Shown one piece after another: positions 30,240 through 54,400 of a stretch of 64,000 nt of DNA. The notes beneath the pieces were generated by a model. It saw nothing but the letters and a program-made list of their open reading frames with translations, was not told where the DNA came from and made no database searches. Location of the stretch: positions 120,900,001-120,964,000 of the forward strand of contig NC_091291.1 of NCBI RefSeq assembly GCF_032444005.1. The letters run 5' to 3'. The position numbers and the translations under genes were made by a program. Each line of letters begins with the position of its first letter. The stretch's first letter is position 1. The stretch is from Ranitomeya imitator. Its lineage: Eukaryota.

Positions 30240-30602
30240 CTGCCCATGATTCTGCCCCATCTGTCTCCACATTCTGCCCCATCTGACTCCACATTCTGCC
30301 CCATCTGTCTCCACATTCTGCCCCACCTGTCTCCACATTCTGCTCCACCTGACTCCACATTCTGCCCCATCTGTCTCCACATTCTGCCCCACCTGTCTCC
30401 ACATTCTGCCCCATCTGACTCCACATTCTGCCCCATCTGACTCCACATTCTGCCCCATCTGTCTCCACATTCTGCCCCACCTGTCTCCACATTCTGCCCC
30501 ATCTGACTCCACATTCTGCCCCATCTGTCTCCACATTCTGCCCCACCTGTCTCCACATTCTGCCCCATCTGACTCCACATTCTGCCCCATCTGTCTCCAC
30601 AT
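30240..30602. repeat. 22-bp minisatellite (ccacattctgccccatctgtct)
   Basis: Tandem copies. The 22-aa period in the track ORFs equals three units. Confidence 0.93.
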
Positions 30603-31465
30603 CTCACCGGAACAGCAGGAACCGGAAATCTGCTGCTGGCTGATACCAGAGAACACGAGCTGCACACAACCAGGACTGGGCTGCTGCTGAGAGCTGAAGG
30701 ACCCATGGTGACGTCATCGTCATGTGATCAGGAGGAGGAGCTGATAAATGGTGAAGGACCTATGATAATGATGACGTCACCACAAGTTCTTCAGCTCTTC
30801 CTTTCTAACAGTTCAGGTGTCGGCTGCTGGGTTGATGTGTGCGCTCGGCAGGTCAGGTGGAGGGCAGGTCTGTCTTTTGCAGTGCGGGAGGAATCACCTG
30901 CGCGGCAACAGTTTTGAACTTTTTGCTGATGTCGGCGTGCATCTGACCTCCCGGGCCCCTGACTCCACCGGGCCCGGTCGCAGTGGCGACTGCTGCGACC
31001 GTGGTAGTTACGCCCCTGTATATATACACAGACACACTTATGTGTCGTGTGCTGTAAATTCACAGCAGGAGCCAACAGGAGAAGAGATGGATTACATGCA
31101 GTATATTCACATAGAATATGTAGATATATAGATGTGTGTGACAAATACAATTAGTACAGTGTGTGTGCAGCTTACTGTACATGTATTTAATTAATAAAAG
31201 ATTATTTTTTGGAAAAAAATGGCGTGGGCTCCCTCTCAATTTTCATAACCAGCAGAGGGAAAGCTGATGGCTGGGGGTCGATGGTTATAGCCAGGGAAGG
31301 AGGTAATACCCATGCAGCTTCCCAGGCTGTTAATATCAGCTCACAGCTGTATATTTAGTCTTTACTGGCTATTAAAATGGGGGACCTGCCCAAAAAAATG
31401 ACAAAGGGTCCCCCTATAGTTAATAACCAGCAAAGGCTATGCAGACAGCTGCAGGCTGATATTAA

Positions 31466-32722
31466 CCCCTTCATGACCAGGGGATTTTTCGTTTTTCCGT
31501 GTTCGTTTTTCGCTCCCCTCCTTCCCAGAGCCATAACTTTTTTATTTTTCCGTCAATTTGGCCATGTGAGGGCTTATTTTTTGCGGGACGAGTTGTACTT
31601 TTGAACGACATCATTGGTTTTAGCATGTCGTGTACTAGAAAACGGGAAAAAAATTCCAAGTGCGGTGAAATTGCAAAAAAAGTGCAATCCCACACTTGTT
31701 TTTTGTTTGGCTTTTTTGCTAGGTTCACTAAATGCTAAAACTGACCTGCCATTATGATTCTCCAGGTCATTACGAGTTCATAGACACCAAACATGACTAG
31801 GTTATTTTTTATCTAAGTGGTGAAAAAAAATTCCAAACTTTGCTAAAAAAAAAAAAAAAATTGCGCCATTTTTCGTGATCTGGGGTCGGTTGAGGGCTTA
31901 TTTTTTGCGTGCCGAGATGACGTTTTTAATGATAGCATTTCGGTGCAGATACGTTCTTTTGATCGCCCGTTATTGCATTTTAATGCAATGTCGCGGCGAC
32001 CAAAAAAACGTAATTCTGGCGTTTCGAATTTTTTTCCCGCTACGCTGTTTAGCGATCAGGTTAATACTTTTTTTTAATTGATAGATCGGGCGATTCTGAG
32101 CGCGGCGATACCAAATATGCGTAGATTTGATATTTTTTTTATTGATTTATTTTGATTGGGGCGAAAGGGGGGTGATTTAAACTTTTATGTTTTTTTTTAT
32201 TTTTTTCACATTTTTTTAAACTTTTTTTTTTTACTTTTGCAATGCTTCAATAGCCTCCATGAGAGGCTAGAAGCAGGCATAGCACGATCGGCTCTGCTAC
32301 ATAGCAGCGATCTGCTGATCGCTGCTATGTAGCAGAATTGCACGTGTGCTGTGAGCGCCGACCACAGGGTGGCGCTCACAGCGACGGGCAATCAGTAACC
32401 ATAGAGGTCTCAAGGACCTCTATGGTTACCATTCACAAGCATCGCCGACCCCCGATCATGTGACGGGGGTCGGCGATGACGTCATTTCCGGCCGCCAGGC
32501 CGGAAGCGGTAGTTAAATGCCGCTGTCTGCGTTTGACAGCGGCATTTAACTAGTTAATAGGTGCGGGCAGATCGCGATTCTGCCCGCGCCTATTACGGGC
32601 ACATGTCAGCTGTTCAAAACAGCTGACATGTCCCGGCTTTGGTGCGGGCTCACCGCGGAGCCCTGCATCAAAGCAGGGGAGCCGGCATCGGACGGTATAG
32701 TACGTCCGATGCCGGTAAGGGG
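31466..32722 (+). mobile_element. Non-autonomous piggyBac-type element with TTAA TSD
   Basis: TTAA at 31462-31465 and 32723-32726, ends CCCCTT...AAGGGG. Interrupts an older repeat. A second copy lies inverted at 50254-51528. Strand label is arbitrary. Confidence 0.88.
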
Positions 32723-33476
32723 TTAATAACCTAGGAAGGGGTTATGGATACTGTCCTCCCTGGCTAAAAACATCAGCTCTCAGCTGCCCCAGAAAAGGTG
32801 CATCTCTAAGATGTGCCAATTCCGGCACTAAGCCTCGCTCTTCCCACTTTCCCTGTAGCGGTGGCAAGTGTTGTGATAGTTGGGGGGGTTGATGTCACCT
32901 TTGTATTGTCAGGTGACATCAAGCCCTGAGGTTAGTAGTGGAAAGGCATCAATAAGACGCCTCCATTTTTAACCCCATAGTCGCATTGTAAGAAAACACA
33001 GACACCCAGAAAAAAGTCCTTTAATTGAAAGAAGACAAAGACTTCTTTAATATTCTTAATTAATCCATACTTACGACCTCGCCCATTCCCCCGATGCCCT
33101 TGTCTTCTGCAAAAGAGTTAAAAAAACAAACAAAAAACAACAATATTCCTCACCCTTCTCCAGAGATGCTGCTAATCCATTTGTCCCACAACGGGTCCAG
33201 CTCTGCTACATCTAGATGGCAAGCTGCATGGTTGCATGATGCGGCAATACAGCCTGTCATCCAGCAGAGACGCTGAGCACCGTGTGCTCAGTGTCTTTCT
33301 GTGAACTCCTATTACCTATCTGACGGCACCACGAGGCGGTTACATTGTGCAACAAACCTACATGTGACTGTACCCCGAGTGTTGTCTGCTCTGGCATCAC
33401 ATGTGTAAACTACCGGTCATTTGTAGCCAGGCCCGTCTCACCAGGATCTTGTCACTTATTTTCCAGGTTTTCTACT

Positions 33477-36400
33477 ATGGAGCAAATTGTTGTCCAGGAT
33501 CTTGAGTTTTTGTATGAAGAAATCAGTTCTACTGTGAGGATCGAAAGTGCACCCGATGTGGTACAGTATGCCGTTTTCATGTCCGGTCTTACCCTTTCCC
33601 ATGGTGCACATTTATAACTCCGTGTCCTCCACATAGGAGCTCCGCTTGTGTCATAATGTACAGCCGGCACTGGAAATTACCCCAAGGGGGTAGAAATAGT
33701 GACATTTACGTGGTCACTGTTGTTTTAGAAAACTTTCCACAAATGACTATGCTCAATAAAATAGAAGACACTTTCTCCTTCGCCTCATTGGGGGACACAG
33801 ACCATGGGTGTATGCTGCTGCCACCAGGAGGCTGACACTAAGTAATACAAAGAAAAAGTTAGCTCCTCCCCTGCAGTATACACCCTCCTGCTGGCTCCCA
33901 GCTCCTCCCCTGCAGTATACACCCTCCTGCTGGCTCCCAGCTCCTCCCCTGCAGTATACACCCCCCTGCTGGCTCTCAGCTCCTCCCCTGCAGTATACAC
34001 CCTCCTGCTGGCTCCCAGCTCCTCCCCTGCAGTATACACCCTCCTGCTGGCTCCCAGCTCCTCCCCTGCAGTATACACCTCCTGCTGGCTCTCAGCTCCT
34101 CCCCTGCAGTATACACCTCCTGCTGGCTCTCAGCTCCTCCCCTGCAGTATACACCTCCTGCTGGCTCTCAGCTCCTCCCCTGCAGTATACACCCTCCTGC
34201 TGGCTCTCAGCTCCTCCCCTGCAGTATACACCTCCTGCTGGCTCTCAGCTGCTCCCCTGCAGTATACACCTCCTGCTGGCTCTCAGCTCCTCCCCTGCAG
34301 TATACAGCCTCCTGCTGGCTCTCAGCTCCTCCCCTGCAGTATATACCCTCCTGCTGGCTCTCAGCTCCTCCCCTGCAGTATACACCCTCCTGCTGGCTCT
34401 CGGCTCCTCCCCTGCAGTATACACCTCCTGCTGGCTCTCAGCTCCTCCCCTGCAGTATACACCCTCCTGCTGGCTCTCAGCTCCTCCCCTGCAGTATACA
34501 CCCTCCTGCTGGCTCTCAGCTCCTCCCCTGCAGTATACACCCTCCTGCTGGCTCTCAGCTCCTCCCCTGCAGTATACACCCTCCTGCTGGCTCTCAGCTC
34601 CTCCCCTGCAGTATACACCCTCCTGCTGGCTCTCAGCTCCTCCCCTGCAGTATACACCTCCTGCTGGCTCTCAGCTCCTCCCCTGCAGTATACACCCTCC
34701 TGCTGGCTCTCAGCTCCTCCCCTGCAGTATACACCCTCCTGCTGGCTCTCAGCTCCTCCCCTGCAGTATACACCTCCTGCTGGCTCTCAGCTCCTCCCCT
34801 GCAGTATACACCCTCCTGCTGGCTCTCAGCTCCTCCCCTGCAGTATACACCCTCCTGCTGGCTCTCAGCTCCTCCCCTGCAGTATACACCCTCCTGCTGG
34901 CTCTCAGCTCCTCCCCTGCAGTATACACCTCCTGCTGGCTCTCAGCTCCTCCCCTGCAGTATACACCCTCCTGCTGGCTCTCAGCTCCTCCCCTGCAGTA
35001 TACACCCTCCTGCTGGCTCTCAGCTCCTCCCCTGCAGTATATACCCTCCTGCTGGCTCTCAGCTCCTCCCCTGCAGTATACACCCTCCTGCTGGCTCTCG
35101 GCTCCTCCCCTGCAGTATACACCTCCTGCTGGCTCTCAGCTCCTCCCCTGCAGTATACACCCTCCTGCTGGCTCTCAGCTCCTCCCCTGCAGTATACACC
35201 CTCCTGCTGGCTCTCAGCTCCTCCCCTGCAGTATACACCCTCCTGCTGGCTCTCAGCTCCTCCCCTGCAGTATACACCCTCCTGCTGGCTCTCAGCTCCT
35301 CCCCTGCAGTATACACCCTCCTGCTGGCTCTCAGCTCCTCCCCTGCAGTATACACCTCCTGCTGGCTCTCAGCTCCTCCCCTGCAGTATACACCCTCCTG
35401 CTGGCTCTCAGCTCCTCCCCTGCAGTATACACCCTCCTGCTGGCTCTCAGCTCCTCCCCTGCAGTATACACCTCCTGCTGGCTCTTAGCTCCTCCCCTGC
35501 AGTATACACCTCCTGCTGGCTCTCAGCTCCTCCCCTGCAGTATACACCTCCTGCTGGCTCTCAGCTCCTCCCCTGCAGTATACACCTCCTGCTGGCTCTC
35601 AGCTCCTCCCCTGCAGTATACACCTCCTGCTGGCTCTCAGCTCCTCCCCTGCAGTATACACCTCCTGCTGGCCCCCAGCTAACCAGTTCTTGCTTAGTGT
35701 CCGTAGGAGGCACACGGACGGGTCTGCTATTCAGACCCAAAGAACTCTTTTTTACCGTTTTTTACTTTTTACTACGGTCGAATGGGGCGACGGATTCTTT
35801 CATGTTCCGATCTCCTCGAACCATCAACAGGCGAACACGGGAGTTTCACCTCTCCGTATCCTCTCCTGCGACGTGGGAAGCCACTGCCTGAGCTGATTTT
35901 AGGGGCGACGGGCCCCTTCATGGGCACCGATCTCCCCCTCCCTTATCAGACGAGCACTGGAGTTTCACCTTCAGTATCCTCTTCTGCAGCCAGGCCTATT
36001 GCCGGACATTCAGCCCTGTCCACCAGGTTTTACCCTCGGCTGTACAGAGGCACCTTCCAGCGTGGCGTCCGAGCAGCCCCCACTGCATCACCACTGAAAA
36101 AGCGGATGATGGAAGGAGGCAGACGGTTCCTCTCCACCCCTCTTCTGCAGGGATGGTGGATGGAGGCTCCCCAACCCTGCACCGTCCTATCTACCCGGGC
36201 ACAGCTCCTACCTGCAGCATCTGCCACCCCCTCCATATTGGGGTAAGTGCTCCGTGAGATTTGGGTTTTCCGGCGGTCAGAGGAGGGCTCCATAGCGACT
36301 GGGTCCCCACAGAGCTTCGCGGCACTTTTCCCCTCAGTCTGCGGGTGCGCGCCGGCCGAAGCCATAAATTTAGTCCCCGGCTTCGGCCCTGTTTAGGCTG

Positions 36401-39400
36401 CATCCCGGGAAGCCCCGCCCACCGCTTGCTCCCTTCTAGCGGCTCCGCCCCCCTATTCAGGCGCTTCTCGTTCCAGACGAGATCTCGGCGGCCATCTTCT
36501 TCCTCCTCCATTGCGGTCACTATTTCTTCTGGAGGGGGCTGCGGCCGGCGGTTTTTCAGCGCTGAAGTCAGCGCTATTCCAGACGGGGGACTCAGAACCT
36601 GAGTAAGATGAATCGCCCCAATATCCCCCCCTCCCCCCGGCACGCATCCCGGCAGCATTAAGGGACTAGCTTTCCCTGTTTTTTATATACTTAAGGCTGC
36701 AATCTCTGGTGCTCCTGCAACTACAGAATGTATAGTACAGTGTGCAGGCTTGCAAACAGAGAGCTGTGAGTTCCCAGCAATGAAGCTCTGGTGACTCGTT
36801 CCCTGGTGACTCGTTCCCTGGTGACTCGTTCCCTGGTGACTCGTTCCCTGGTGACTGGTTCCCTGGTGACTGGTTCCCTGGTGACTCGTTCCCTGGTGAC
36901 TGGTTCCCTGGTGACTGGTTCCCTGGTGACTGGTTCCCTGGTGACTCGTTCCCTGGTGACTCGTTCCCTGGTGACTCGTTCCCTGGTGACTGGTTCCCTG
37001 GTGACTGGTTCCCTGGTGACTGGTTCCCTGGTGACTGGTTCCCTGGTGACTGGTTCCCTGGTGACTGGTTCCCTGGTGACTCGTTCCCTGGTGACTCGTT
37101 CCCTGGTGACTGGTTCCCTGGTGACTGGTTCCCTGGTGACTCGTTCCCTGGTGACTCGTTCCCTGGTGACTCGTTCCCTGGTGACTCGTTCCCTGGTGAC
37201 TGGTTCCCTGGTGACTCATTCCCTGGTATTTAATACTCTGCCCGGTAGTCGCTGGGCCCATAGGTGCATCCCCAGCTCTCCATGCCTTTTTATTAAACCC
37301 AGGACCAGCATTCCCTGGTCTTAAGGGTCCCCTAGTTTTAAAAGGGTCACATCCCCAGCATTCTCTGCTCTGCCAGAAGCCGGTCTCCTTTTCCTTAGTA
37401 CTAAATCAGGCCAGTATGCCCTGGTCTTAAAGGCACAGGGCCAGTAGGCACTGGTCTTAAAGGCACATGGCAAGTATGCCCTCGTCTTAAAGGCACATGA
37501 CCAGCATCCCTGGTCTTAAAGGAGCATGACCAGCATTCTTGTTCTTAAAGGCACATTACCAGCTTTGCTGGTCTTTAAGGCACTTGTTCCAACATTCCTT
37601 TCATGACCAGTATTCCTGGTCTTAAAGGCACGTGACCAGCATGCCCTGGTCTTATAGACTCGTGACCAGTATCCCCTGGTCTTAAAGACACGTGTCCAGT
37701 ATACCCTGGTCTTAAAGGCACATGACCAGTATGCCCTTGTCTTAAAGGCACGTGACCAGTATTTCCTGGTCTTAAAGGCACATGACCAGTATGCCCTGGT
37801 CTTAAAGGCACGTGACCAGTATCCCCTGGTCTTAAACGCTATAACCAGTAGGCCCTGGTCTTAAAGGCACATGACCATTATGCCCTGGACTTAAAGGCTC
37901 AGGACCAGTACGCCCTGGTCTTAAACGCAAATGACCAGCATACCCTGGTTTTAAGGGCACATGACCATTATCTCCTGGATTTCAGCATGCCCTGCTTTTA
38001 AAGGCACATGAACAGTATGTCATCTTACAAAAGGCACAAGACCAGTATTCCCTGGTCTTAAAGGCTCAGGGCCAGTAACCCCTAGCCTTAACGGCGCATG
38101 ACCAGTATTTAGTGGTCTTAAGGGCACATCATCTATCCTAAGCTGGTCACCCTAACTGAGCTCTGGAGCACTCACATGCTCCCTCTCCTACAATGGGAGC
38201 CTTCGGCTAGCAGGGGCCCAAGTATTCTAGAAAAACGTACAGGTTCTAGAAAATCTCCATCAAGATTTGACGGTGATGCACTGGAAGACCTCTAAGTAGG
38301 ATACCATACCTGGTCGGAATTTTATGGGCGACGGGTCCCTTAAAGGGCTCCGATTTCCCCCCACACCTTCAAGAGACGAGCACACGGAGTGTCGCCTCCA
38401 TGTATCTTCTTCTGCATCCAGGTCTATCGCCACAACCTGCCCTGTCCACTCGGAAACCTCAATTCTGGGGATGTGGCGTCCACATTTGTGGCGTCCCAAC
38501 AAGGAGGTTTCCCCCCCTTTGTATCAGATGCAAGAAAGTGGACGATTCCTCTCCACTTCCCTGTTAAGAAGATGGTGGATCGAGGTTTTTCCTTATTTTC
38601 TTCTCTGCACGACGATGGCAGAGACCTGCTGGTTACAGTCCCGCATTCTGTCACTTGGCAGACTCGCCGGGCAGAATTTCTTGCGGTATTCCTACCAGTA
38701 TCCTGGCCGGTGTATCATCAATTAAGATTCCACAGACAGTCGGATAGCAAATCTAGTTCGTTCCGTCTTGTGGTTTCGGGTTCAGCGCTCTACCCTTCCT
38801 TAGCCGCATGGGTTGCTTGACCAAAGGGAGAGAATGAAAGTCTCCGGGTCCCAGACCTTATCTACTTCGTTCCACAGTATAGCTGGCCAATCAGATCTTC
38901 TGAGCGGGAGACTAGCAAGGGATCGTATCTCTTCTTCAGGCTCAACCAGCAGTGGAAGCATTGGCCAGGACAGTCTAGATCTAAGGGATCTTGGTTCCAA
39001 AATGGAGGGAATGAAAAGTATCTCCATTCCTGGACCCCAAACTTCTAACAACCTTTAACAGGGCCCTTTCATTTTTCGGATGGAGTTCCTCCGCTCAGCC
39101 ACTACTTCAACAGAGAAACGTGGTTGTTTTCTGGCATCCATCGTCATTCGGGATTCTTACCCTCACATACCTATTTCTCCTCTCTACTATAATCTCTTCG
39201 CCTTTCCATTCGCGAACAGTATTTTCACGACCTGGCCCTTCTGCCTGGCTACGACACCAGAGTGGTCGCAAGGGTCATGACGGTTGTCATGTTCTTCTTG
39301 CACCTTAGAAGCATGGTCGTCCTTCCTCTATTTGGTCGACTTTGTAGCCGCTCTCCTAGGACTACGCTGAGTCGTCCATATCACTTGCAATTACCTCTCT

Positions 39401-42400
39401 ATTGGGCTAGCAGCTAAACTTAGACAAGTTTTTTTCCTCATTCTCAGCCCAGCAGATCCTCTTTGAGGATGATCCTGCCCAAGAAGGATGGTTATTCTCT
39501 CTCGGGTCTAGGTCGTGGCCCTTCTACAGGGAGCTTGCGCACTCGATCTCTCATTCCCTCGGTTCTTTCAATTCACTAGGAGGGTTCTGAGGGAAAGGAC
39601 GTCTACGGAAGCAGTTTCCTTCGCTGTGCTCGTTTTCTGCAAGTCAATCAGGCTCTCAAAGGGTAGTCTCTGAGCTCCTTTCTCTTCCAGAGCCTTCTCC
39701 TGGCCCAAGGGCTATTGGGAGATACCATTGCCAGTTTTCTTCTCCCGATCATCTCTCTGTAGAACCGAACGGTACGGCTATTCCTTCAGCAGGCCCTCTG
39801 CCTTCTGGCGGGTCTTCAGTTGGATAATGCCTCGGCTGTGCCCCAAGTTAGCCATCTAGCAAGTACCCTCAGTCAAGCGCCATGGCTAAGGTACCTCGCA
39901 CTCTCTGATGGGCCGAGTTCTATCTTCGGTGATCTCAACAGTACATTCCCTGGAGTAGTACACTGGGCGGCAGACATATTCAGCCGTCCGGGGTTTTTCC
40001 TCAAGTGAGTGGGAACTTCACTCGGAAATCTTCCATCGGACCTGCCTTCACTGGAGTACTCCAGAGGTAGTTCGGATGGCGTCCAAGCTGAACGCCAATG
40101 TACTCCAGTTCATGGTTTGGCCTCGCGATCCAGGACCATTGCAGTGCATGATCTATTCTTCCATGGTACCAATTTCCATAACCCCTCTTCCACTACGTCT
40201 GAAACCTTTTCGGAAGCGGGTAGGGCCCCAGTGATCCCGGGAGACCCGCACTGACCATGTCAGGTTTTTTTCTCGCTTGCGGTACTAGTATTTTTCCGGC
40301 TTATTGTCTCAAGCTGGAAATATGGTCTTTCTTGCAGGCCTCAACCTGTAGTTCTTCCCTACCACGTACCGTTAAATCCGTGGGACCTTAATGGTCTTGG
40401 GCATCTTACAGTGGACTCCTTTTCTGATCCGGATAGACTTTTCTATCAGGGAGGGTCTCTCCCCTTCTTTCTCTGCGTTCTTGTCCTCCTGATGAGTCTT
40501 CAGATCTCGACGCTCTGTTCTTTATCTTTTTTCCTTATTACCTTCAAGGCAAGGTTGCCCTCTAGCCATCCTATTCCCTCGTTGCCAAGGGGTATTATAT
40601 CTCCACTGTTGCAGGGGCATCGTCCTCTCATCTCCTTCGGCTCTAGTCCACAAAGCGGAATGGGTTCTCCATAATCTGGAAGAAGCGAGTGCTCCGAGTG
40701 GGTACGTATCGAGGACGATGTCCTTCCAAAGGTTGGACATTTTACTCGGGTTTTTCGATGGTAAGTAGGCTTCCTGACGGTCGCAGGAAGGGTTTAGCCG
40801 TTTTTCTTCGGCGAGGTTAGCCTGGTGGATTCTTTTCTCCATCCAGGAGTGCTTTCGCGCTAGATGCCAGCCTATCTCCCTGTCTGAGGGCTCTAGGCGC
40901 CAGACGTCGGCAAGCACGACCGCAGGCTTGCGAATTTCTCCAGGCCGCATGCATTCTTGAAGCACTATATTTCACTCACTTCCACAGATGTGAGTCTGGG
41001 CAGGTGGACTTTGCAGGCCGCGGTGGCGCACTTGTAAGTAGCGGCTACACGGCCTGAAGTGATGTTGTCCCCACCCAGGGACTGCTTTGGGACGTCCTAT
41101 GGTCTGTGTCCCCCAATGAGGCGAAGGAGAAATAGGGATTTTTGTGTACTCACCGTAAAATCCTTTTCTCCGAGCCATTCATTGGGGGACACAGCTCCCA
41201 CCCTATTATTAGCTTATGCTTTGTTTTTATCTTTTGATATGTTATACTCTTATATATAATGTGACATGCTTTACGCTTATATGTCGTTATTGATCTCCTA
41301 CTGCTTTTGCACCGAACTGGTTAGCTGGGAGCCAGCAGGAGGGTGTATACTGCAGGGGAGGAGCTAACTTTTTCTTTGTATTACTTAGTGTCAGCCTCCT
41401 GGTGGCAGCAGCATACACCCATGGTCTGTGTCCCCCAATGAATGGCTCGGAGAAAAGGATTTTACGGTGAGTACACAAAAATCCCTATTTGTAATGCATC
41501 TTATCAGAGAGATATGCTTTGTTCTCCACTTATGAGCCACTTCTATCCTTCTGCCTACTGAACTCATCCATTCACAACTGGGGAATTCCTTCTTGGTTAA
41601 AGCAAAACAGACCCTCCCCATTCACTGAGAGATCAGATTACAGCTGCCTATTGATGTCTATGAAGGAAGGAGGAGTACTCTGCACAATCAGAGGCCAGGT
41701 AGAGAGGCAGGCTGATCCTGCTGCAACTTATAAGAAATGGTGCTGAATTCACAGCCACACAGCTCAGTAATGCTTCAGTTGCAATCACAATGATTTAACC
41801 CCCATTTACAAACATTCTGCTGTTTGCCATAAACCAATGAAATGGATATATTGTCTTGAACTATTTACATTGTAACAAGGTTTCTTCTAATTTATAACAA
41901 AATGCCACTTTTACTGACTACTGAATTCCCAGAATTATTCACATCCTTCATGACATGCATCTTCACTACTTAGAGCCTCTCTGGCTGTTATAACCTGCTG
42001 CAAACATGATCCATAGTCAGACAACCGCTTCTGGCAGTGTTCCTTAGAAATATTAGCCCATTCCTCATGGACAATGGCCTTCAGCTCACTAATATTCTTA
42101 GGTTTGTGTGATGCAACTGCAAATCCTATCAAGTATTTTTTTTATGAGAGTCAATTCGGGTGAGTGACAGACGTTGAAAAATCTACCAGGACGTTTTCTG
42201 AAACCAAATATTGTGGTATGCTTGGGATCGTTGTCCAGTTGGAAGGTCCAATGACACTCAAACTTTAGCCTCCTCAAGGGAGGTATGAAGATTCCTCCTA
42301 AGGTTTCTTGATATCTGATTAAATCGATCTTTACTGCTTCATTGTTGGCATCACCAAGCCAATGCTATGTGTCATTGTAGGCATCATTGCGCCAGCATGC

Positions 42401-45400
42401 TTATCTGTAGGCATCACTGGTCACCACAACGCTTCACTGTAGGTGTTAATGAGCCACCACCATGCTTCACTGTAGGCAGGATATTCTTTTCAATGTATGC
42501 TTCATCCTTCCTCCTCCAGACATACCGCTTATCCGTAGGCCCAAGAAGTTCCAGTTTTGTTTCTGTTCTCTATAAAGGCACGGATGATTGACCTCGTGGA
42601 GACCAAAACATCTAACACCGCGGAGACACCATCACGTGTTTCTCAACGCAGTGATCCAGAACACTGCCCCCAAATATGCAAATGCAAGTAGACGAGCTGC
42701 GGAGACACCATCACATGTTTCTCAACGCAGGCAGTGAATAGCCAGGCCTTTCCCCGGGAAGGAACAACCAAGGGAAGGGCAGCATCCAATAAAGGAAAAA
42801 ATCCAATAAAGGAAAACCACCTATGCCAAGCATGGTATCCATCCACAGACAGCTGTTTCGGGGTTTTTGCCCCTCATCAGTGTGGAGTAGGAAACTGGCT
42901 ATCAGGAGCAGTGCCTAGTAGAAAGTCTATAAAGGCACTGATGATTGACCTCGTGGAGACCAAAACATCCAACACCGCGGAGACACCATCACGTGTTTCT
43001 CAACGCAGTGATCCAGAACACTGCCCCCAAATATGCAAATGCAAGTAGAGGAGCTGCGGAGACACCATCACATGTTTCTCAACTCAGGCAGTGAATAGCC
43101 AGGCCTTTCCCCGGGAAGGAACAACCAAGGGAAGGACAGCATCCAATAAAGGAAAACATCCAATAAAGGAAAACCACCTATGCCAAGCATGGTATCCATC
43201 CACAGACAGCTGTTTCGGGGTTTTTGCCCCTCATCAGTGTGGAGTAGGAAACTGGCTATCAGGAGCAGTGCCTAGTAGAAAGGCTATAAAGGCACGGATG
43301 ATTGACCTTGGCCTGGCTATTCACTTATAGACTTTCTACTAGGCACTGCTCCTGATAGCCAGTTTCCTACTCCACACTGATGAGGGACAAAAACCCCGAA
43401 ACAGCTGTCTGTGGATGGATACCATGCTTGGCATAGGTGGTTTTCCTTTATTGGATGTTTTCCTTTATTGGATGCTGCCCTTCCCTTGGTTGTTCCTTCC
43501 CGGGGAAAGGCCTGGCTATTCACTGCCTGCGTTGAGAAACATGTGATGGTGTCTCCGCAGCTCCTCTACTTGTTTCTGTTCTCTACAGAACAGAATCTCA
43601 GAACCTCTTTACATTATTTATATGGGTTTGAGCATATTGGAGACGTCTTTTCTTATTCTTTTGGGTCAGTAGAGGCGAAGTCTTGGAGTTCGGTCGTGGA
43701 GACATTCAGTCTGCGTCTGCGGCCACTACATCTTTCTGCAAGTTTTTTTTTTTTTTGCAGACATTCAAGGATTGTAATGAGCGGTTGACACCATGAAACG
43801 CCCAATGGTATTGGAGCAGTTGACACCATTTGGTCCCACTATTGCTCATTGTTTCCTTCCTTCACAGGCCAGAGCGTGTACTCCGATCCATGTTTTCTCA
43901 TCGTGTGCACTGTACGCCCCTATACGTTTTGTTTCCAGTACATTATGTTTTGTTTTACATTTTTGCACCAAAAAGTATCTGTGTATGCAATGTTTATATC
44001 ATAAGTCTTTTTATCTATATTACTTTGCATATTTCCCCTCTTTTTATCTATATTACTTTGCATATTTCCCCTTTAGGTGTTGATGCCCTCACCCGAAATC
44101 TGCCAGTTGAAAACTTTGGATTCCTTGGAGGCTGCCATGCAGGCCATTAATGAGTTTGAGGAAAGCACCATCTCAAATTATACTGTTGTAGAGAAAAAAA
44201 AAGATTTTGGAAATGAAGGTAATCTTAACTGTTGGTTTTCATGAACATTAATTCTAAAGGGTTATTTTAGCCTTTTAGACTGATTTTAGGTCCCACCGAT
44301 CACCAGAACTGGGGACTAGTGTGCTCCATTCTCTATTGGCCTCCATACTGCATAGATTGGCCGGTCGCACATGCATGGAAGAAGCTTTTTACTCCTCTAT
44401 AGTACTGAAAATAACCTGATATAGCCCAGCACTGCACAGCACTCTGCTATATTTGTGAGTGCCATTGAATTAAATATTGCCTCAGGTCGCATATGCGACC
44501 TGACACTCATTGCATCTCCTCCTTGTCACGTTCTTGCTTGCCCCCGCTCAAGTAGTCATCTGGGGTCCAATACCAATCTCAGAGGATAGGGTATAACTTA
44601 TTTAGGTTATAATTCCCATTGCTGTTTTTGTGAAACCTGTGATGTCCATGATGATTTTATATAATGACTTTTTCATAGAGAAAATGATCCTTTGTTTTGG
44701 GAAGTCGGGAGAGATGGTTATTGGCCGGACCACCATTCTGACAACACCTATCTAATGTGTATGGCCGGCTTGTGTCTATATGATCCCTCCACCTACAGAG
44801 ATCAATAGATTGCCAGTCGTTCTTTATTCCATGAGCTCTCTTATTTAAAGGGGTTTCCAGTTTCAGGGGAAAAAAAGTCCCCGGTTGCAGTTTAAAAAAA
44901 AAAAAAAAAACCTCCTCGGGTCCACTGCTGAGTCTCCACCACTTATCCTGGTGTCTCTTACTGTCTGCAGCGCTGACGTTACAGCAACAGCGCTGCAAAC
45001 AATCACTGTGGTCAGCAGCTCTGCCAAATTGAAAGCATGAGCCGCTTAGCTTACTGATTGGCTGCAGCGCTGTCCAAGTGACATTAATGCTACAGACAAC
45101 GGAAAAAAGCAGCGGAGACTCAGCGCTGGACCCAGAGACGGTGAATAAAGCAAAGTAGTAAATGATTTTGTGGTAATTTTTTTTTTTTCTACTTTGATAT
45201 TTTTAAAGCATTCAAGCCGACGTCGAAGCTTACCTTGCACTGGGAAGGACCGTTCATTAATAACGTTTCGCTGAATGAGTACTCAGGAGTTCCCTTCATG
45301 ATTGTTGGAAGAAAGGTTTTAGGTTGCCATCTTGGTAGGGACAAGGCACTAGCCCAGAAAAGGAAATATGCCGAGTCTATAAGTCAGAGAGAGGTAAAAC

Positions 45401-48400
45401 CTTTTGATTCTAGATAATTTATTGAACGATTTAGACTATGTGTATTATTAATGGTGTGTACGTCTTTACATAGTTGCTCCATACATACCGTATAGTAAAA
45501 TAAAGCACCTACAGGAATGGTAGTGACCGAAAATACTAATTTGGAGCACTGATGACAGTGACATAGTATTCTGCTTATGAAAACAATCTCCTGCAGCAGC
45601 CTATCCCCAAAGTTAGTGAGCCCCAGGTGCTGAGCTCACCCATCACTGCCATCAACTGTACTCCAAATGACTACATTCTGATTATTAATGTAGCTGAAAG
45701 CAAATAGTTTGGGGGAAAGCCAGGGTTTGGAAGTCACTTATGTGCAGTTTATTTCCATGAAAGAATTCATATCCTTTAATATAGTGATTTGCACACAAAT
45801 ATATAAATATAAATATGAACGTTTAGTTACTCTTCAACATTGAAAAGTCATTTTCTCCTTCGCCTCATTGGGGGCCACAGCCCGTGGTGTTTGCTGCTGA
45901 CACTAAGTGATACAAAGAAAGTTCTCTCCTCCCCTGCAGTATACACCTCCTGCCGGCTCTCAGCTCCTCCCCCGCAGTATACACCTCCTGCTGGTTCTCA
46001 GCTCCTCCCCTGCAGTATACACCCTCCTGCTGGCTCTCGGCTCCTCCCCTGCAGTATACACCCTCCTGCTGGCTCTCAGCTCCTCTCCTGCAGTATACAC
46101 CTCCTGCTGGCTCTCAGCTCCTCCCCTGCAGTGTACACCCTCCTGCTGGCTCTCAGCTCCTCCCCTGCAGTATACACCTCCTGCTGGCTCTCAGCTCCTC
46201 CCCTGCAGTGTACACCCTCCTGCTGGCTCTCAGCTCCTCCCCTGCAGTATACACCTCCTGCTGGCTCTCAGCTCCTCCCCTGCAGTGTACACCCTCCTGC
46301 TGGCTCTCAGCTCCTCTCCTGCAGTATACACCTCCTGCTGGCTCTCAGCTCCTCCCCTGCAGTGTACACCCTCCTGCTGGCTCTCAGCTCCTCCCCTGCA
46401 GTATACACCTCCTGCTGGCTCTCCGCTCCTCCCCTGCAGTATACACCCTCCTGCTGGCTCTCAGCTCCTCCCCTGCAGTGTACACCTCCTGCTGGCTCTC
46501 CGCTCCTCCCCTGCAGTATACACCTCCTGCTGGCTCTCAGCTCCTCCCCTGCAGTATACACCTCCTGCTGGCTCTCAGCTCCTCCCCTGCAGTATACACC
46601 TCCTGCTGGCTCTCAGCTCCTCTCCTGCAGTATACACCTCCTGCTGGCTCTCAGCTCCTCCCCTGCAGTGTACACCTCCTGCTGGCTCTCCGCTCCTCCC
46701 CTGCAGTATACACCTCCTGCTGGCTCTCAGCTCCTCTCCTGCAGTATACACCTCCTGCTGGCTCTCAGCTCCTCTCCTGCAGTATACACCTCCTGCTGGC
46801 TCTCAGCTCCTCCCCTGCAGTGTACACCTCCTGCTGGCTCTCCGCTCCTCCCCTGCAGTATACACCTCCTGCTGGCTCTCAGCTCCTCTCCTGCAGTATA
46901 CACCTCCTGCTGGCTCTCAGCTCCTCTCCTGCAGTATACACCTCCTGCTGGCTCTCCGCTCCTCCCCTGCAGTATACACCTCCTGCTGGCTCTCAGCTCC
47001 TCCCCTGCAGTATACACCCTCCTGCTGGCTCTCAGCTCCTCCCCTGCAGTATACACCCTCCTGCTGGCTCTCAGCTCCTCCCCTGCAGTATACACCTCCT
47101 GCTGGCTCTCAGCTCCTCCCCTGCAGTATACACCCTCCTGCTGGCTCTCAGCTCCTCCCCTGCAGTATACACCCTCCTGCTGGCTCTCAGCTCCTCCCCT
47201 GCAGTATACACCCTCCTGCTGGCTCTCAGCTCCTCCCCTGCAGTATTCACCCTCCTGCTGGCTCTCAGCTCCTCCTCTGCAGTATACACCTCCTGCTGGC
47301 TCTCAGCTCCTCCCCTGCAGTGTACACCTCCTGCTGGCTCTCAGCTCCTCCCCTGCAGTATACACCTCCTGCTGGCTCTCAGCTCCTCCCCTGCAGTATA
47401 CACCCTCCTGCTGGCTCTCAGCTCCTCCCCTGCAGTATACACCCTCCTGCTGGCTCTCAGCTCCTCCCCTGCAGTGTACACCCTCCTGCTGGCTCTCAAC
47501 TCCTCCCCTGCAGTATACAGCCTCCTGCTGGCTCTCAGCTCCTCCCCTGCAGTATACACCCTCCTGCTGGCTCTCAGCTCCTCCCCTGCAGTATACACCT
47601 CCTGCTTCCTCTCAGCGCCTCCCCTGCAGTATACACCTCCTGCTGGCTCTCAGCTCCTCCCCTGCAGTATACACCTCCTGCTGGCTCTCAGCTCCTCCCC
47701 TGCAGTATACACCCTCCTGCTTCCTCTCAGCTCCTCCCCTGCAGTATACACCTCCTGCTGGCTCTCAGCTCCTCTCCTGCAGTATACACCTCCTGCTGCT
47801 CTCAGCTCCTCCCCTGCAGTATACACCTCCTGCTGGCTCTCAGCTCCTCCCCTGCAGTATACACCCTCCTGCTGGCTCTCAGCTCCTCCCCTGCAGTATA
47901 CACCTCCTGCTGGCTCTCGGCTCCTCCCCTGCAGTATACACTTTCCTGCTGGCTCTCGGCTCCTCCCCTGCAGTATACACCTCCTGCTGGCTCTCGGCTC
48001 CTCCTTTGCAGTATACACCTCCTGCTGGCTCTCGGCTCCTCCTTTGCAGTATACACCTCCTGCTGGCTCTCGGCTCCTCCCCTGCAGTATACACCCTCCT
48101 GCTGGCTCTCAGCTCCTCCCCTGCAGTATACACCCTCCTGCTGGCTCTCGGCTCCTCCTTTGCAGTATACACCTCCTGCTGGCTCTCGGCTCCTCCCCTG
48201 CAGTATACACCTCCTGCTGGCTCTCGGCTCCTCCCCTGCAGTATACACCCTCCTGCTGGCTCTCAGCTCCTCCCCTGCAGTATACACCCTCCTGCTGGCT
48301 CTCGGCTCCTCCCCTGCAGTATTCACCCTCCTGCTGGCTCTCGGCTCCTCCCCTGCAGTATACACCCTCCTGCTGGCTCTCGGCTCCTCCCCTGCAGTGT

Positions 48401-51400
48401 ACACCCCCCTGCTGGCTCTCAGCTCCTCCCCTGCAGTATACACCCTCCTGCTGGCTCTCAGCTCCTCCCCTGCAGTATACACCCTCCTGCCGGCTCTCAG
48501 CTCCTCCCCTGCAGTATACACCTCCTGCTGGCTCTCGGCTCCTCCCCTGCAGTATACACCCTCCTGCTGGCTCTCAGCTCCTCCCCTGCAGTATACACCT
48601 CCTGCTGGCTCTCGGCTCCTCCCCTGCAGTATACACCTCCTGCTGTCTCTCGGCTCCTCCCCTGCAGTATACACCTCCTGCTGGCTCTCGGCTCCTCCCC
48701 TGCAGTATACACCTCCTGCTGGCTCTCAGCTCCTCCCCTGCAGTATACACCTCCTGCTGGCTCTCAGCTCCTCCCCTGCAGTATATACCTCCTGCTGGCT
48801 CTCGGCTCCTCCCCTGCAGTATACACCCTCCTGCTGGCTCTCAGCTCCTCCCCTGCAGTATACACCCTCCTGCTGGCTCTCGGCTCCTCCCCTGCAGTAT
48901 TCACCCTCCTGCTGGCTCTCGGCTCCTCCCCTGCAGTATACACCCTCCTGCTGGCTCTCGGCTCCTCCCCTGCAGTATTCACCCTCCTGCTGGCTCTCGG
49001 CTCCTCCCCTGCAGTATACACCCTCCTGCTGGCTCTCAGCTCCTCCCCTGCAGTATACACCTCCTGCTGGCTCTCAGCTCCTCCCCTGCAGTATACACCT
49101 CCTGCTGGCTCTCAGCTCCTCCCCTGCAGTATACACCCTCCTGCTGGCTCTCAGCTCCTCCCCTGCAGTATACACCCTCCTGCCGGCTCTCAGCTCCCCT
49201 GCAGTATACACCTCCTGCTGGCTCTCGGCTAACCAGTTCTTGCTTAGTGCCTGTAGGAGGCACATGGGTCTGTTTCAGACCCCAACGTTTTTATTTTACT
49301 TTTCTGTAAATTTGTATTTTGTAATTAACGGAGTGAAGGGGGTGACGGATCCTTTCAAGGTTCCGATCTTCCCCGAACCATCAACAGGCGAGCACGGCGA
49401 GTATACCTCCCCGTACCCTCTCCTGTGACGTGGGAAGCCATGCCTGAGCTCACTTCAGGGGCGACGGTTCCTTTCATGGTCCCGATCTCCCCACACCAGC
49501 AGCAGGCTACCACATGGAGTGTCACCTCCATGTATCCTCTCCTGGAGCCAGGCCTAATGCCGGACAACTGGCCCTGTTCACCTGGCGACTGAACTCCGTG
49601 GATGTACAGAGGCCCCTCTCTATGGCGTCCGAGCAGCCCCCACTGTCCCACCACTGTGAAAGCGGATGGCACAAGGAGGCGGACGGGTCCTCTCCACCTC
49701 CCTAACAAACGGATGGTGGATTGAGGTTTATCCCTGCACCGTCCACACTGCAATACCCGACCTGCAGTCATCCGCGGCGGCTCCATGCCGGGACGCGCAC
49801 CGATGGTGAGTGGATCCAGTCAGCGGTGGGCCTCTGCAGCGGGATATTCACATGCTGACAGGCAGCCTCAGCTTCCCTGTGGCCCACCTCCCTGAGGTAA
49901 CGCTCCAGCCGGCTGCAAAAATTTAGCCCCCGGCTTCGGCCGATGTGTAGGCCGCAACCCAGAAGCGCACTATGGCGCCCTAAGATGGTTCCGCCCGCTT
50001 TTCTTGCGCTTCTCGCCTGGCACGGAAGCGCTCAATTTTCTCGGCCACAACGCCCCTCACTTCTACCGCTGGTATCGCTCCCGCAGGTGCAGGAATTTAG
50101 GCCCCGGCTTGGGCCTGTTCATGGAAGTCTCGAGGCTCCACCCCCCCGAATTGGCGCTTCTCGCCCTCTGCAAGATTTTATCACCTCTGCAACTCCCAGT
50201 GGCCATCTTGGTCCACCCGGCCGGCTCACACAGGGGCGACGACTTTGTATTAACCCCTTTCTGACCTCGGACGGGATAGTACATCCGAGGTCAGAAGCCC
50301 CGCTTTGATGTGGGCTCCGGCGGTGAGCCCGCATCAAAGCCGGGACATGTCAGCTGTTTTGAACAGCTGACATGTGCCCGTAATAGGCGCAGGCAGAATC
50401 GCGATCCACCCGCCGCTATTAACTAGTTAAATGCCGCTGTCAAACGCAGACAGCGGCATTTAACTACCGCTTCCGGCCGGGCGGCCGGAAATGATCGTAT
50501 CGCCGACCCCCGTCACATGATCGGAGGTCGGCGATGCTTGTACATTGTAACCATAGAGGTCCTTGAGACCTCTATGGTTACTGATCACCGGCAGCTGTGA
50601 GCACCACCCTGTGGTCGGCGCTCACAGCACACCTGCAATTCTGCTACATAGCAGCGAACATCAGATCGCTTCTATGTAGCAGAGGCGATCGAGTTGTGCC
50701 TGCTTCTAGCCTCCTATGGAGGCTATTGAAGCATGACAAAAGTAAAAAAAAATAATAAAAAAAAATGTGAAAAAAATAAAATATAAAAGTTTAAATCACC
50801 CCCCTTTCGCCCCAGTCAAAATAAGTCAATAAAAAAAATCAATCTTACAAATATTTGGTATCGCCGCGTTCAGAATCGCCCGATCTATCAATAAAAAAAA
50901 AGCATTAACCTGATCGCTAAACGGCGTAGCGAGAAAAAAATTCGAAACGCCAGAATTCCTTTTTTTTGGTCGCTGCGACATTGCATTAAAATGCAATAAT
51001 GGGCGATCAAAAGAACGTATCTGCACTGAAGTGGTATAATTAAAAACTCCAGCTCGGAACGCAAAAAATAAGCCCTCAACCGACCCAGATCATGAAAAAT
51101 GGAGACGCTACGAGTATCGGAAAATGGCGCAATTTTTTTTTTTTTTTTAGCAAAGTTTGGAATTTTTTTTCACCACTTAGATAAAAAATAACCTAGACAT
51201 GTTTGGTGTCTATGAACTCGTACTGACCTGGAGAATCACAATGGCAGCTCAGTTTTAGCAGTTAGTGAACCTAGCAAAAAAGCCAAACAAAAAACAAGTG
51301 TGGGATTGCACTTTTTTTTGCAATTTCACTGCACTTGGAATTTTTTTCCCGTTTTCTAGTACATGACATGGTAAAACCAATGGTGTTGTTCAAAAGTACA

Positions 51401-54400
51401 ACTCGTCCCGCAAAAAATAAGCCCTCACATGACCATATTGACGAAAAAATAAAAAAATTATGGCTCTGGGAAGGAGGGGAGTGAAACATGAACACGGAAA
51501 AACGGAAAATCCCAATGTCATGAAGGGGTTAAAGGAGCACAACGACTCTGCACATGGCATGATTAAGGCATGACCCTGGTCTTAAAGGCACATGACCAGT
51601 ATTCTCTGGTCTTAAAGGCACATAACCAGTATTCCCTGGTCTCAAAGGCACACGACCAGTATTCCCTGGTCTTAGAGGCACACGACCAGTATTCCCTGGT
51701 CTTAAAGGCACACGACCAGTATTCCCTGGTCTTAAAGGCACACGACCAGTATTCCCTGGTCTTAAAGGCACACGACCAGTATTCCCTGGTCTTAAAGGCA
51801 CACGACCAGTATTCCCTGGTCACATGACCAATCCGAAGCCGGTCACCCTAAATGAGTTCAGGAGCCCTCTGCCACTGATCCCAGTTTTTCCCAGTGTACC
51901 TAGTTCCCTCAGGACTTCATCACTGCCGCAACCCATGGTTTCTCTGACCAAGAGATTGAAACCCTCCGTGGCTCGGAGTGCTCGCAGGACCGATATACAT
52001 GGTCCCTCTCCTACATGGGATCCGTCGGGTACCAGGGGCCGCAAGTATTCTAGAAACGTACAGGCATCTAGAAAAAGAAAGTTTTCATTTCATGATCTCT
52101 CTCTCCAAGGATTTGCTGAGGGATGTACAAAGGCAACATGGATCGGATATTGCCTTGGACCTGGACTTGCCAGAGCTTCAGTAAATGATGAACGCTCCTA
52201 TTTATATCATCAACCAATCTCTGTACATTGACGAGGACTCCGGTTCTGCTCTACACTACGCAGTGTCCCTCATAAGGAGACTAAACTCCCTCGTAGAGCA
52301 TTTGCCATTCAGTCCAGATATGCGATTCACTGGACAGAAGCCTCTACGTGGGATGCCATGCCTGGTCTGATTTTTAAGAGCGACGGGTCCTTTAAAGGGC
52401 TCCAATCTCCCCACACTATCAACAGACGAGCACACGGAGTGTCGCCTCCATGTATCCTCTTCTGCATCCAGACCTAACGCCAGACAACCTGTCCTGTCCA
52501 CCCGGAGACCTGAACTCTGTGGATGTACAGAGGCACCCTTTTCAGGCGTCTGAGCACCCCCTCTGCATCACCACTATTTAGCAGAAGATGCAAGAAGGCG
52601 GACAATCCCTCTCCACTTCCCTGTTAAGAGGATGATGGATCGAGGGTTCCTAATTTTTATCTGCACCGTCAAAAGAGAGCGGCGATGGCAAGAGACTATG
52701 ACCTGCTGGATGCAGCCGCACATTCTGCCACTTGGCAGATTAATCGGGTAGAATCTCCTGTTGTATACCTACCAATATACCTGCCTGATGTGTCATCAAT
52801 TGAAAATACCACAGACTGTCAAATAGCATCTGGTTCGTTCCATTTTGCGGCTTCGGGCCCAGAGCTCTACCCTCCCTAGCCGCCGCATGGATTGCTAGAG
52901 CAATGGTCTCCTGGCTGGAGACCTTAACTACTTTGATTCACACCAGTAACCTTTTCCTGAAGACAGTACAACTGGCCAATCAAATCTTTTGAGCGGGAGA
53001 CTAACAAAGGATCGTACGTCCCTACAGCCCCAACCGGCAGTGGAAGGGTTGTCTAGAACAGTCTAGATCTAAGGGATCTTGATTCCAAAAAGGGGAACGA
53101 AAAGTAAGACCGATCCTGGACCTCAAACTTCTAACAACCTTTGACATGGTCCTCCTTCTTCGAATGGAATTCCTCTGCTCAGCCATTACTTCAACAGAAA
53201 AAGGTGGAGTTTCTGGCATCCATCGACATTCGGGATGCTTACCCTCTTCAAAAATTTCCTTCGCTTTTCCATTCGTGAACAGCATTTTCAAGTCACGACC
53301 TTGTCCTTCGGCTTTGCTACCGCACCCAGAGTGTTCGCAAGACTCATGGTGGCTGTCATGTTCCTGTTGCACCCTAGAGGCGTGCTCGTCCTGCCCTGTT
53401 TGGCCGACTGTCTTGACGCCCTTCCAGGACTACACTGAGTCATCTATATCACTTGCGATACCCTCTCACCTGGGCTGGCATCTAAACTTAGACAAGTTCT
53501 CCTCATTTCCAGCCCAGCAGATATCCTTTTTGAGGATGATCCTGCACACTTCTAGAAGGATGGTAATCCTCCCTCGAGATAAGGTCATGGCCCTTCAACA
53601 TGGAGCTCGCGCATGTGATCACTCACCTCCTCATTTCATTCGATTTGCTGGGAGGGTTCTGAGGAAAAATGGTGACGACAATGGAAGCGGTTTCCTTCGC
53701 TCCATTCGTTTTCAGCAAGTCAAACAGACTTTCAGACGATAGTCTCTGAGCTCCTTCTTCATCCAGGGCCTTTCTCCTGGTTCCATGGTTATTAGTAACT
53801 ACCAATGCCAGTCTTCTTCTCCTGATCATTGCTCTGGAGATCTCAATGGTAGTCCTACAGCAGGTCCACTGCCTTCTGGCGGGTCAACCCATCCGAATTC
53901 AATTGGACAATGCCACGGCTGTGCCATACGTCAATCATCTAGCAGGTACTCACGGTCAGGCGCCATGGCCGAGGTACCTCACATTCTCTGATGGGCCGAG
54001 ACCTATCATTTGGTGATCTCGGCAGTACATATCCCAGGAGTAGAACTCTGGGCGGCGAACACATTCAGCCGTCAGGGTTTCGCCTCAAGTGAGTGGGAAC
54101 TTCACCCGGAGGTCTTCCATCAGACCTGCCTTCACTGGAGCTCTCCAGTTGTAGATCGGAGGGCGTCCAGATTGATCGCCAATGTACTTGAGTTCGTGGT
54201 TCGACCTCAAGATCCAAGAGCCATCGCACTGCATGCTCTGGTTCTTCCGTGGCACCAGTTTCCATAACTCCCCTTCCACTACTTCCGAAAGCCTTTCAGA
54301 AACAGAAAGGGCCCCAGTGATCCTCGGAAATCCGCACTGACCACGTCAGTTGTTTGCTTGCGGAGCTGGTAGCTTTCCGCCTTTCTGCAACAAAACTGCA

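Follow-up and report, generated by a model that had tools for sequence, protein, structure and literature searches.

A one-sided minisatellite in the left inverted terminal repeat of two non-coding DIRS elements from a poison frog

Introduction

A large part of the genomes of poison frogs and of other amphibians with giant genomes consists of DIRS elements, and to our knowledge the replication of these elements has been tested in Dictyostelium only. Here, we describe two non-coding DIRS copies, elements A and B, in a 64,000-nucleotide stretch of Ranitomeya imitator DNA (contig NC_091291.1, positions 120,900,001 to 120,964,000; referred to as the window in the following, with positions counted from its first letter). 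In both copies, the left inverted terminal repeat (ITR) contains a kilobase-sized minisatellite, of which the right ITR carries a single unit.

The closest described systems are the DIRS1-like families of anurans, as surveyed in Xenopus (PMC9210276), and DIRS-1 of Dictyostelium with its replication model (Cappello et al., summarised in PMC7192593). According to this model, the right long terminal repeat (LTR) is the source from which most of its left counterpart is rebuilt, and the internal complementary region (ICR) restores only the extreme termini. The original prediction for this locus, which had one ITR copied from the other via the ICR, corresponds roughly to this scheme, but merges its two steps, the rebuilding of the ITR and the restoration of the termini by the ICR. 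In several respects, A and B are built like the Xenopus and Dictyostelium elements: with the array collapsed to one unit, their ITRs are about 120-140 bp long, the ICR lies beside the right ITR, TTT is found at the circle junction, and remnants of reverse transcriptase (RT) and RNase H are present. A coding DIRS in the same window, copy C, furthermore has a LAP2alpha-like gag, as do anuran DIRS. Unlike the known elements, A and B have a left ITR of 1.9-3.5 kb, in which an inner segment is repeated 47-86 times, next to a right ITR with one unit, and they have lost all coding capacity. Tandem repeats in ITRs are mentioned neither in the Xenopus survey (PMC9210276) nor in the DIRS overview, and in the papers on DIRS and on repeat-bearing transposons that we consulted, no DIRS element is described as having an array in an ITR.

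Mobile elements that carry tandem repeats are in themselves a known theme, represented by Tetris, repeat-bearing MITEs (miniature inverted-repeat transposable elements), the monomers of L1 and CR1, and the variable number of tandem repeats (VNTR) region of SVA. Mouse L1 carries tandem promoter monomers at its 5' end, the number of which varies among copies. Like these monomers of long interspersed nuclear elements (LINEs), the arrays of A and B run head-to-tail at the 5' side, consist of a unit that resembles a core promoter, and vary in copy number. By contrast, LINE monomers measure 126-200 bp and the units described here 38 or 39 bp, their promoter role is putative, and the best initiator-like motif, CCAGTT, follows the array instead of recurring in each unit. 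Hominid SVA elements are non-autonomous and mobilised by L1, and their GC-rich VNTR of 35-50-bp units, which is internal and fully transcribed, changes in length both between retrotransposition generations and in place. A and B resemble SVA in that they are non-autonomous, are mobilised in trans and carry a minisatellite, but their array lies in a terminal repeat that, according to the model, is not copied from RNA.

Tandem repeats in or beside terminal inverted repeats are also found in the foldback transposon Tetris of Drosophila virilis (PMC4079207) and in MITEs such as DTC84 (PMC3879986). In these elements, the number of units varies among copies, and they have been proposed as sources of satellite DNA (PMC4079207; PMC3879986). 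However, Tetris and the MITEs are DNA transposons, by which arrays are trivially carried, and foldback elements have repeats in both arms, whereas A and B are retroelements with a one-sided array, for which the replication model predicts a reset. The new twist of the present case is its bearing on the way in which DIRS ends are rebuilt.

Structure of the two elements

Elements A and B are collinear, share about 77% sequence identity, and lie 10 kb apart in the same orientation. Their parts follow one order: left terminus, 76-bp ITR core, unit or units, 12-nt inner end of the ITR, body, ICR, spacer and inverted right ITR.

33772-41490, plus strand: element A, a young non-coding DIRS-type copy, delimited by its ITRs, the matches between termini and ICR, unrelated flanks and RT/RNase H remnants
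33772-33860, plus strand: left terminus and ITR core of A (outer left ITR), from self-comparison
33861-35680, plus strand: array A, 47 units and a closing AGCT (Tandem Repeats Finder and unit splitting)
35677-35688, plus strand: inner end of the left ITR of A, AGCTAACCAGTT (12 nt), with the initiator-like CCAGTT
36788-37227, plus strand: internal array of 15 bp x 29 with 97% matches (Tandem Repeats Finder), found in A only, with no counterpart in B
37409-38128, plus strand: 30-bp internal arrays of A, 75-87% identical to 51574-51821 in B
39074-40132, plus strand: degenerate RT/RNase H remnants of A, recovered by tblastn with the RT open reading frame (ORF) of copy C as three short pieces whose frames change
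41101-41194, plus strand: ICR of A, the complement of the left terminus followed by that of the right terminus
41315-41490, minus strand: right ITR of A, with one unit at 41327-41365
45852-55604, plus strand: element B, an older non-coding copy of the lineage of A, collinear with it
45924-49230, plus strand: array B, 86 units and a closing GGCT (unit splitting), with local higher-order blocks
50248-51532, minus strand: unrelated 1.3-kb repeat inserted in B, 89% identical in opposite orientation to 31462-32728, just left of A
51574-51821, plus strand: 30-bp x 8.3 array of B
53089-55087, plus strand: degenerate RT/RNase H/ORF3 remnants of B, with frames that change between pieces and 26-35 stops per frame
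55174-55267, plus strand: ICR of B
55431-55604, minus strand: right ITR of B, with one unit at 55443-55481

The ends of A are intact. Positions 33785-33899 are the exact reverse complement of 41441-41327, the left terminus (33772-33803) is complementary to the ICR (41101-41132) at 32 of 32 positions, and the right terminus (41426-41490) agrees with ICR positions 41130-41194 at 65 of 65. The ICR junction reads ...CCCTATTT/CTCCTTCGCC and has the trinucleotide TTT in common with both ends, as A starts with TTTCTCC and ends with CCCTATTT; no target-site duplication is seen in the flanks of A. ITRs, an ICR, and a shared trinucleotide without target-site duplication are the marks of a DIRS1-like architecture, from which A and B depart in their lack of coding capacity for gag, RT/RNase H (with MT) and a tyrosine recombinase. 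At the inner side, the ITR homology of A ends after AGCTAACCAGTT, where the left copy goes on with cttgcttag and the right copy with cggtgcaaa. The left inner junction is thus AGCTAACCAGTT followed by CTTGCTTAGTG, the right one AGCTAACCAGTT followed by YGGTGCAAAAGC, and the inner end of the left ITR of B reads GGCTAACCAGTT.

A leader segment located just interior to the left ITR is found a second time some 2.5 kb deeper in the element, with 69-74% identity, in A at 35784-36187 and 38297-38600 and in B at 49458-49744 and 52346-52653. In the A/B lineage, internal parts of two DIRS may have been combined as a chimera within one ITR/ICR frame.

Arrays in the left inverted terminal repeats

In Tandem Repeats Finder, array A (33861-35680) has a period of 39, 47.1 copies, 97% matches and a score of 3423, and array B (45926-49230) a period of 38, 86.1 copies, 95% matches and a score of 5734. 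When split into units, array A yields 47, of which 31 measure 39 bp and 16 measure 38 bp, and is closed by AGCT; array B yields 86 (39 measuring 39 bp, 45 measuring 38 bp, and two irregular ones) and is closed by GGCT. With head-to-tail units in the range of 10-100 bp, lengths of 1.8 kb (A) and 3.3 kb (B), and 95-97% matches, both are minisatellites. They share position and phase within the ITR: both lie in sense orientation between the ITR core and the inner ITR edge of the left end, 5' of the element body, start directly after ...AAGTT and stop before (A/G)GCTAACCAGTT. The repeated unit corresponds to that inner ITR segment which is conserved best (CTCCTCCYCTGCAGTRTACACC...).

The core motif of this unit, CTGCAGTATACACC, occurs 138 times in the window with at most one mismatch, compared to an expectation of 0.03. 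Outside the two arrays, it is found singly in each of the five other ITRs of the window. Two of these sites, at 41342-41355 and 55458-55471 on the minus strand, belong to the right ITRs of A and B; the others, at 10079, 16126 and 63604, belong to two further DIRS copies:

9980-16272, plus strand: copy C, a coding DIRS of another family with one unit per ITR (both sites 10079 and 16126) and ORFs of 475, 790 and 947 aa
63498-64000, plus strand: copy D, the left end of one more DIRS that runs beyond the window, with one unit (site 63604)

Unit splitting and motif count thus confirm that a 39-bp segment is present about 47 times in the left ITR of A and about 86 times in that of B, but once in each right ITR, as had been read from the sequence before. 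The motif count likewise bears out the earlier statement that the DIRS copies at 9980 (C) and 63497 (D, which starts at 63498 in our delimitation) are unamplified, with one unit per ITR. The single unit in the right ITR of A is flanked by AGCT on both sides (AGCT...AGCT), while in B the first of these repeats reads CGCT.

The one-sided minisatellite in the left ITR of these two non-coding copies is real. The array lengths do rest on the assembly, and contigs built with k=31 cannot span a 39-bp repeat; it is nevertheless very improbable that the arrays are absent from the genome or that the assembler inflated or collapsed them. Each is ordered internally, showing duplications, higher-order blocks and private variants, and the two differ from each other; their junctions are clean and unique on both sides; the 64-kb window is free of N throughout; and lengths of 1.8 and 3.3 kb are well within those of long reads. 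Logan contigs from four runs, searched over 35372-36250, are of this k=31 type and can neither link 39-bp units nor tell one unit from many. In these contigs, the leader region (35372-36250) is multi-copy in the sequenced organisms labelled A and B and weaker in organisms C and D; in run X1, the summed unit depth is about 1.4-4.3 times the depth of the ITR inner junction, a ratio that is not a copy number.

Age, coding capacity and independence

Element A is young and element B older. Alongside the perfect agreement of its termini with the ICR, the ITRs of A are identical at 115 of 115 positions, whereas those of B agree at 90 of 97 positions, with 17 additional gap columns, and its termini match the ICR at 29 of 32 and 62 of 64 positions. 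Substitutions relative to two consensus unit types number 23 in 1817 bp in array A and 89 in 3304 bp in array B, and the higher load of the latter fits B as the older copy.

A comparison of the flanks of A and B reveals no homology apart from other repeats. Because their flanks are unrelated, the two elements are independent insertions, and a segmental duplication as the origin of the pair is rejected on the same grounds.

Neither copy has retained genes. Over 2.8 kb, each reading frame contains 19-35 stops (19-32 in A, 26-35 in B), and the coding content is limited to short RT/RNase H/ORF3-like pieces in shifting frames, with no gag match in A or B. A protein search with a 624-aa ORF that runs through array A returned no match, not even to its own window, probably owing to composition filters, and a search with the 154-aa ORF just inside the left ITR of A likewise returned none. 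As A is young and without genes, its mobilisation must have occurred in trans, and we therefore assign A and B to a DIRS1-type lineage of a Ranitomeya-like poison frog that is non-coding and non-autonomous.

Promoter-like motifs

In the seven ITRs of the window, (C/T)CAGTT coincides with the inner ITR boundary and is preceded by the motif GT(A/G)TAC at a distance of 30-32 nt, a spacing that was computed for five of them and counted by eye for D and the right ITR of C:

35650-35688 and 41315-41353: GT(A/G)TAC-(C/T)CAGTT sites of A
49200-49238 and 55431-55469: GT(A/G)TAC-(C/T)CAGTT sites of B
about 10080-10120 and about 16090-16140: GT(A/G)TAC-(C/T)CAGTT sites of C
about 63605-63645: GT(A/G)TAC-(C/T)CAGTT site of D

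The sequence between the palindromic GT(A/G)TAC and (C/T)CAGTT varies across families, and the spacing is kept. From their sequence and arrangement, the two motifs are a candidate core promoter in both ITRs, directed in sense on the left and in antisense on the right. GTATAC is repeated in every array unit, whereas no equally good initiator motif is found inside the units; in element A, the initiator-like CCAGTT (at about 35686) follows 30-31 nt after the GTATAC of the last unit, and its counterpart in B lies at about 49236.

Origin of the arrays

The two arrays are composed of the same unit types. A 39-bp consensus type is dominant in both, with 22 units in A and 15 in B; a second dominant type of 38 bp, which lacks one C of ACACCCTCC, is represented by 12 units in A and 16 in B; and a third is common to both arrays with two and four units, respectively. 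The longer C4 run of the unit shows no comparable length variant.

Within array A, unit position 38 is informative. The unit in the right ITR of A ends with GGCTCCC and thus has C at this position, a state that the array shows at its edges only: on the outer side in units 1, 2, 4 and 5, on the inner side in unit 47. In units 6-46, and thus in 41 of the 47, the base is T. T is the family majority at this position, with 86% of contig depth at 35675 in run X1, and also at 35673. Since the bulk of array A differs from the right-ITR unit, it does not seem to be an amplification of the ITR unit of A itself, and slippage amplification of that unit during retrotransposition is rejected as the sole source. 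Both arrays have additionally been remodelled in place, as evidenced by internal duplications and higher-order blocks: units 13-21 of A recur as units 31-39, and B contains a dimer in units 6-13, repeated blocks of three to four units in 15-28 and blocks rich in G at position 1 in 53-81.

What we favour, with about as much confidence as doubt, is that the left-ITR array is a heritable trait of the non-autonomous A/B lineage, carried along through retrotransposition, and that it was remodelled further in place by growth and loss. Four observations support inheritance: position and phase of the array are the same in two insertions that are independent; both dominant unit types are common to A and B; the young copy A has an array whose bulk is unlike its own right-ITR unit; and units 1, 2, 4 and 5 of the right-ITR type stand beside an ITR core that is 100% identical to that of the right ITR. 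The 30-bp array at homologous positions in A and B indicates that arrays inside the transcribed body were inherited in this lineage, too. Of the seven ITR units in the window, those in the left ITRs of A and B are the only expanded ones; a random pair would coincide with them with 1 chance in 21. Of the two options that the original prediction had left side by side, a family that carries the array is thus preferred over independent slippage after insertion, in view of the shared phase, the 38/39-bp dimorphism and the bulk of array A, which is not of the unit type of its own ITR.

Several points weigh against this reading. It is drawn from two copies only. With C at position 38 also in unit 47, the innermost one, array A has edges of its own type on both sides and a different interior, which is the classic picture of growth in place or of an insertion of foreign units. 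The window contains another kilobase array of 38-bp units (24581-26315), and in-place expansion is common here. The short distance between A and B and their common orientation make an exchange between the arrays possible. As judged from the motifs, the TATA-like box and the initiator look as if they would set the main start site after the array, which would leave it untranscribed. Finally, if the left LTR is rebuilt from the right LTR, an array upstream of the start would be lost or reset.

The own-type edges of A would be explained by an exchange at the DNA level, which we consider unlikely. In this scenario, the array of B arose once in place, and the young element A, which had arrived with one unit, acquired more of them through gene conversion or unequal recombination, with B or some other copy that has an array as the donor, and expanded them locally. 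Edges in the own state at position 38 (units 1, 2, 4, 5 and 47) around a B-like interior are expected if foreign units were inserted into a single unit, and the distance of 10 kb in direct orientation would favour such an event. The two arrays also have an exact stretch of 289 bp in common (A from 34636, B from 46958), a length that was reached in 0 of 300 shuffles of the unit order (mean 169, maximum 269). However, this match corresponds to the pattern 8-9-9-8-9-9-9 in runs of pure units, for which we estimate about a one-in-three chance in A; the shuffle test thus overstates the stretch, and we do not count it as strong evidence for exchange. Moreover, the private variants of B are nearly absent from A: G at position 1 is present in about 24 of the 86 units of B, but in only two of the 47 of A, and G at position 18 (11 units of B), T at position 9 (eight) and C at position 1 (five) do not appear in A at all. 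An exchange would also have had very little time in A, which shows 0 ITR/ICR differences in 212 paired bases.

Less probable still are two independent expansions in place, each of which would have started after insertion from a single unit via the AGCT...AGCT microhomology, with nothing transmitted between copies. This would agree with the canonical DIRS-1 model, where the right LTR is the template for rebuilding the left one, and also with transcription that starts at the inner edge of the ITR. In-place dynamics are indeed clear in both arrays, from the 18-unit duplication in A to the dimer and the multi-unit blocks in B; similar minisatellites are plentiful in the genome; and edge units of A that keep the state of their own ITR are expected at the unhomogenised ends of an array. 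Yet, the same 39-bp segment would have to have been chosen twice in the same phase, and the same 1-bp deletion variant would have to have reached 34% in A and 52% in B. In the young element A, position 38 would have to have changed early to the family-majority base and swept the interior, while 424 ITR/ICR bases remained unchanged. Neither of the right ITRs, nor C, nor D is expanded.

A possible route through retrotransposition

If the array is inherited through retrotransposition, as we favour, several details of its route can be proposed. In the most far-reaching version, which we put forward tentatively and regard as rather doubtful, transcription would start within the array or at its outer edge, the units would serve as weak TATA-like modules, and only the ITR core and the outermost unit would be rebuilt from the right ITR. 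The anatomy, the independence of the insertions, the youth of A, the loss of genes and the shared unit types are observed; that the array goes through RNA, where its transcription begins and whether the units act as promoters is what we infer.

In the mechanism that we propose for the inheritance, at least some template RNAs would have to start inside the array or at its outer edge, and the units downstream of the start would be copied through RNA; read-through from upstream could be another route to an array-bearing RNA. During completion of the cDNA, the single-unit right ITR would rebuild no more than the ITR core with the outermost unit or units, and the ICR would supply the extreme termini. 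To this end, the cDNA complement of the 5'-most unit might anneal to the one unit of the right-ITR copy, from where it would be extended across the ITR core. Rebuilding might be primed on the 4-nt AGCT repeat, with one right-type unit added at the outer edge per cycle. Under such a scheme, the right ITR would stay at one unit, the core would be identical on both sides, and right-type units would be found at the outer edge of the array, next to an interior of another type, as is the case in A. After insertion, unequal exchange or slippage keeps changing the arrays in place; the internal duplications and the higher-order blocks are explained in this way, and so, probably, is some of the length that the arrays have now. 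By way of hypothesis, the lineage could also seed satellites, that is, free arrays elsewhere in the genome.

Other repeats and the coding copy in the window

Positions 24581-26315 hold a minisatellite of 38 bp x 45.7 with 95% matches, the sequence of which is unrelated to arrays A and B. Short inverted repeats, ATTAGTCCAACATGTG and CACATGTTGGACTAAT, flank it, and at its end the unit of the array appears once more in inverted form; in this it resembles a foldback or hairpin element. At 42569-43572, a 357-bp tandem repeat (2.1 copies) has a 248-nt inverted arm with 98-99% complementarity. Together with the array at 36788-37227 inside A, further arrays at 1776-2246 and 30249-30602 mark the window as generally rich in minisatellites. 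With Rfam at gathering thresholds, nothing in the 64 kb was matched, and neither the unit-unit junction nor the conserved ITR motif yielded hits when metagenomes were scanned.

The coding copy C has Pfam matches to a LAP2alpha-like gag, RVT_1 and RT_RNaseH, and no recombinase domain at the Pfam threshold. Its gag (11486-12913) matches Pfam LAP2alpha with an E-value of 4e-13 and is, in a protein search, 96-98% identical to proteins of Ranitomeya imitator; the search also matched proteins of R. variabilis, Dendrobates tinctorius and Anomaloglossus, on long contigs. The gag is found fused into many annotated Ranitomeya imitator 'proteins', among them CCT, WASH5, CDC27 and Piwi; these seem to be chimeric gene models that have taken in DIRS copies from introns.

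Implications

An array that is confined to one of two otherwise matching ITRs is a built-in marker for the replication mechanism of DIRS elements. If it is inherited, the transcript of a vertebrate DIRS must begin well inside the left ITR, and the right ITR repairs only the outer part; if it is not, this ITR segment is a recurrent hotspot of minisatellite formation. Should the array indeed be transmitted, the C/T boundary at unit position 38 in A would mark where, at the left end of a vertebrate DIRS, the part copied from RNA meets the part copied from the right ITR. The A/B lineage would then be a disperser of minisatellite seeds, and the DIRS order would join those elements that carry, and may spread, the seeds of tandem repeats.

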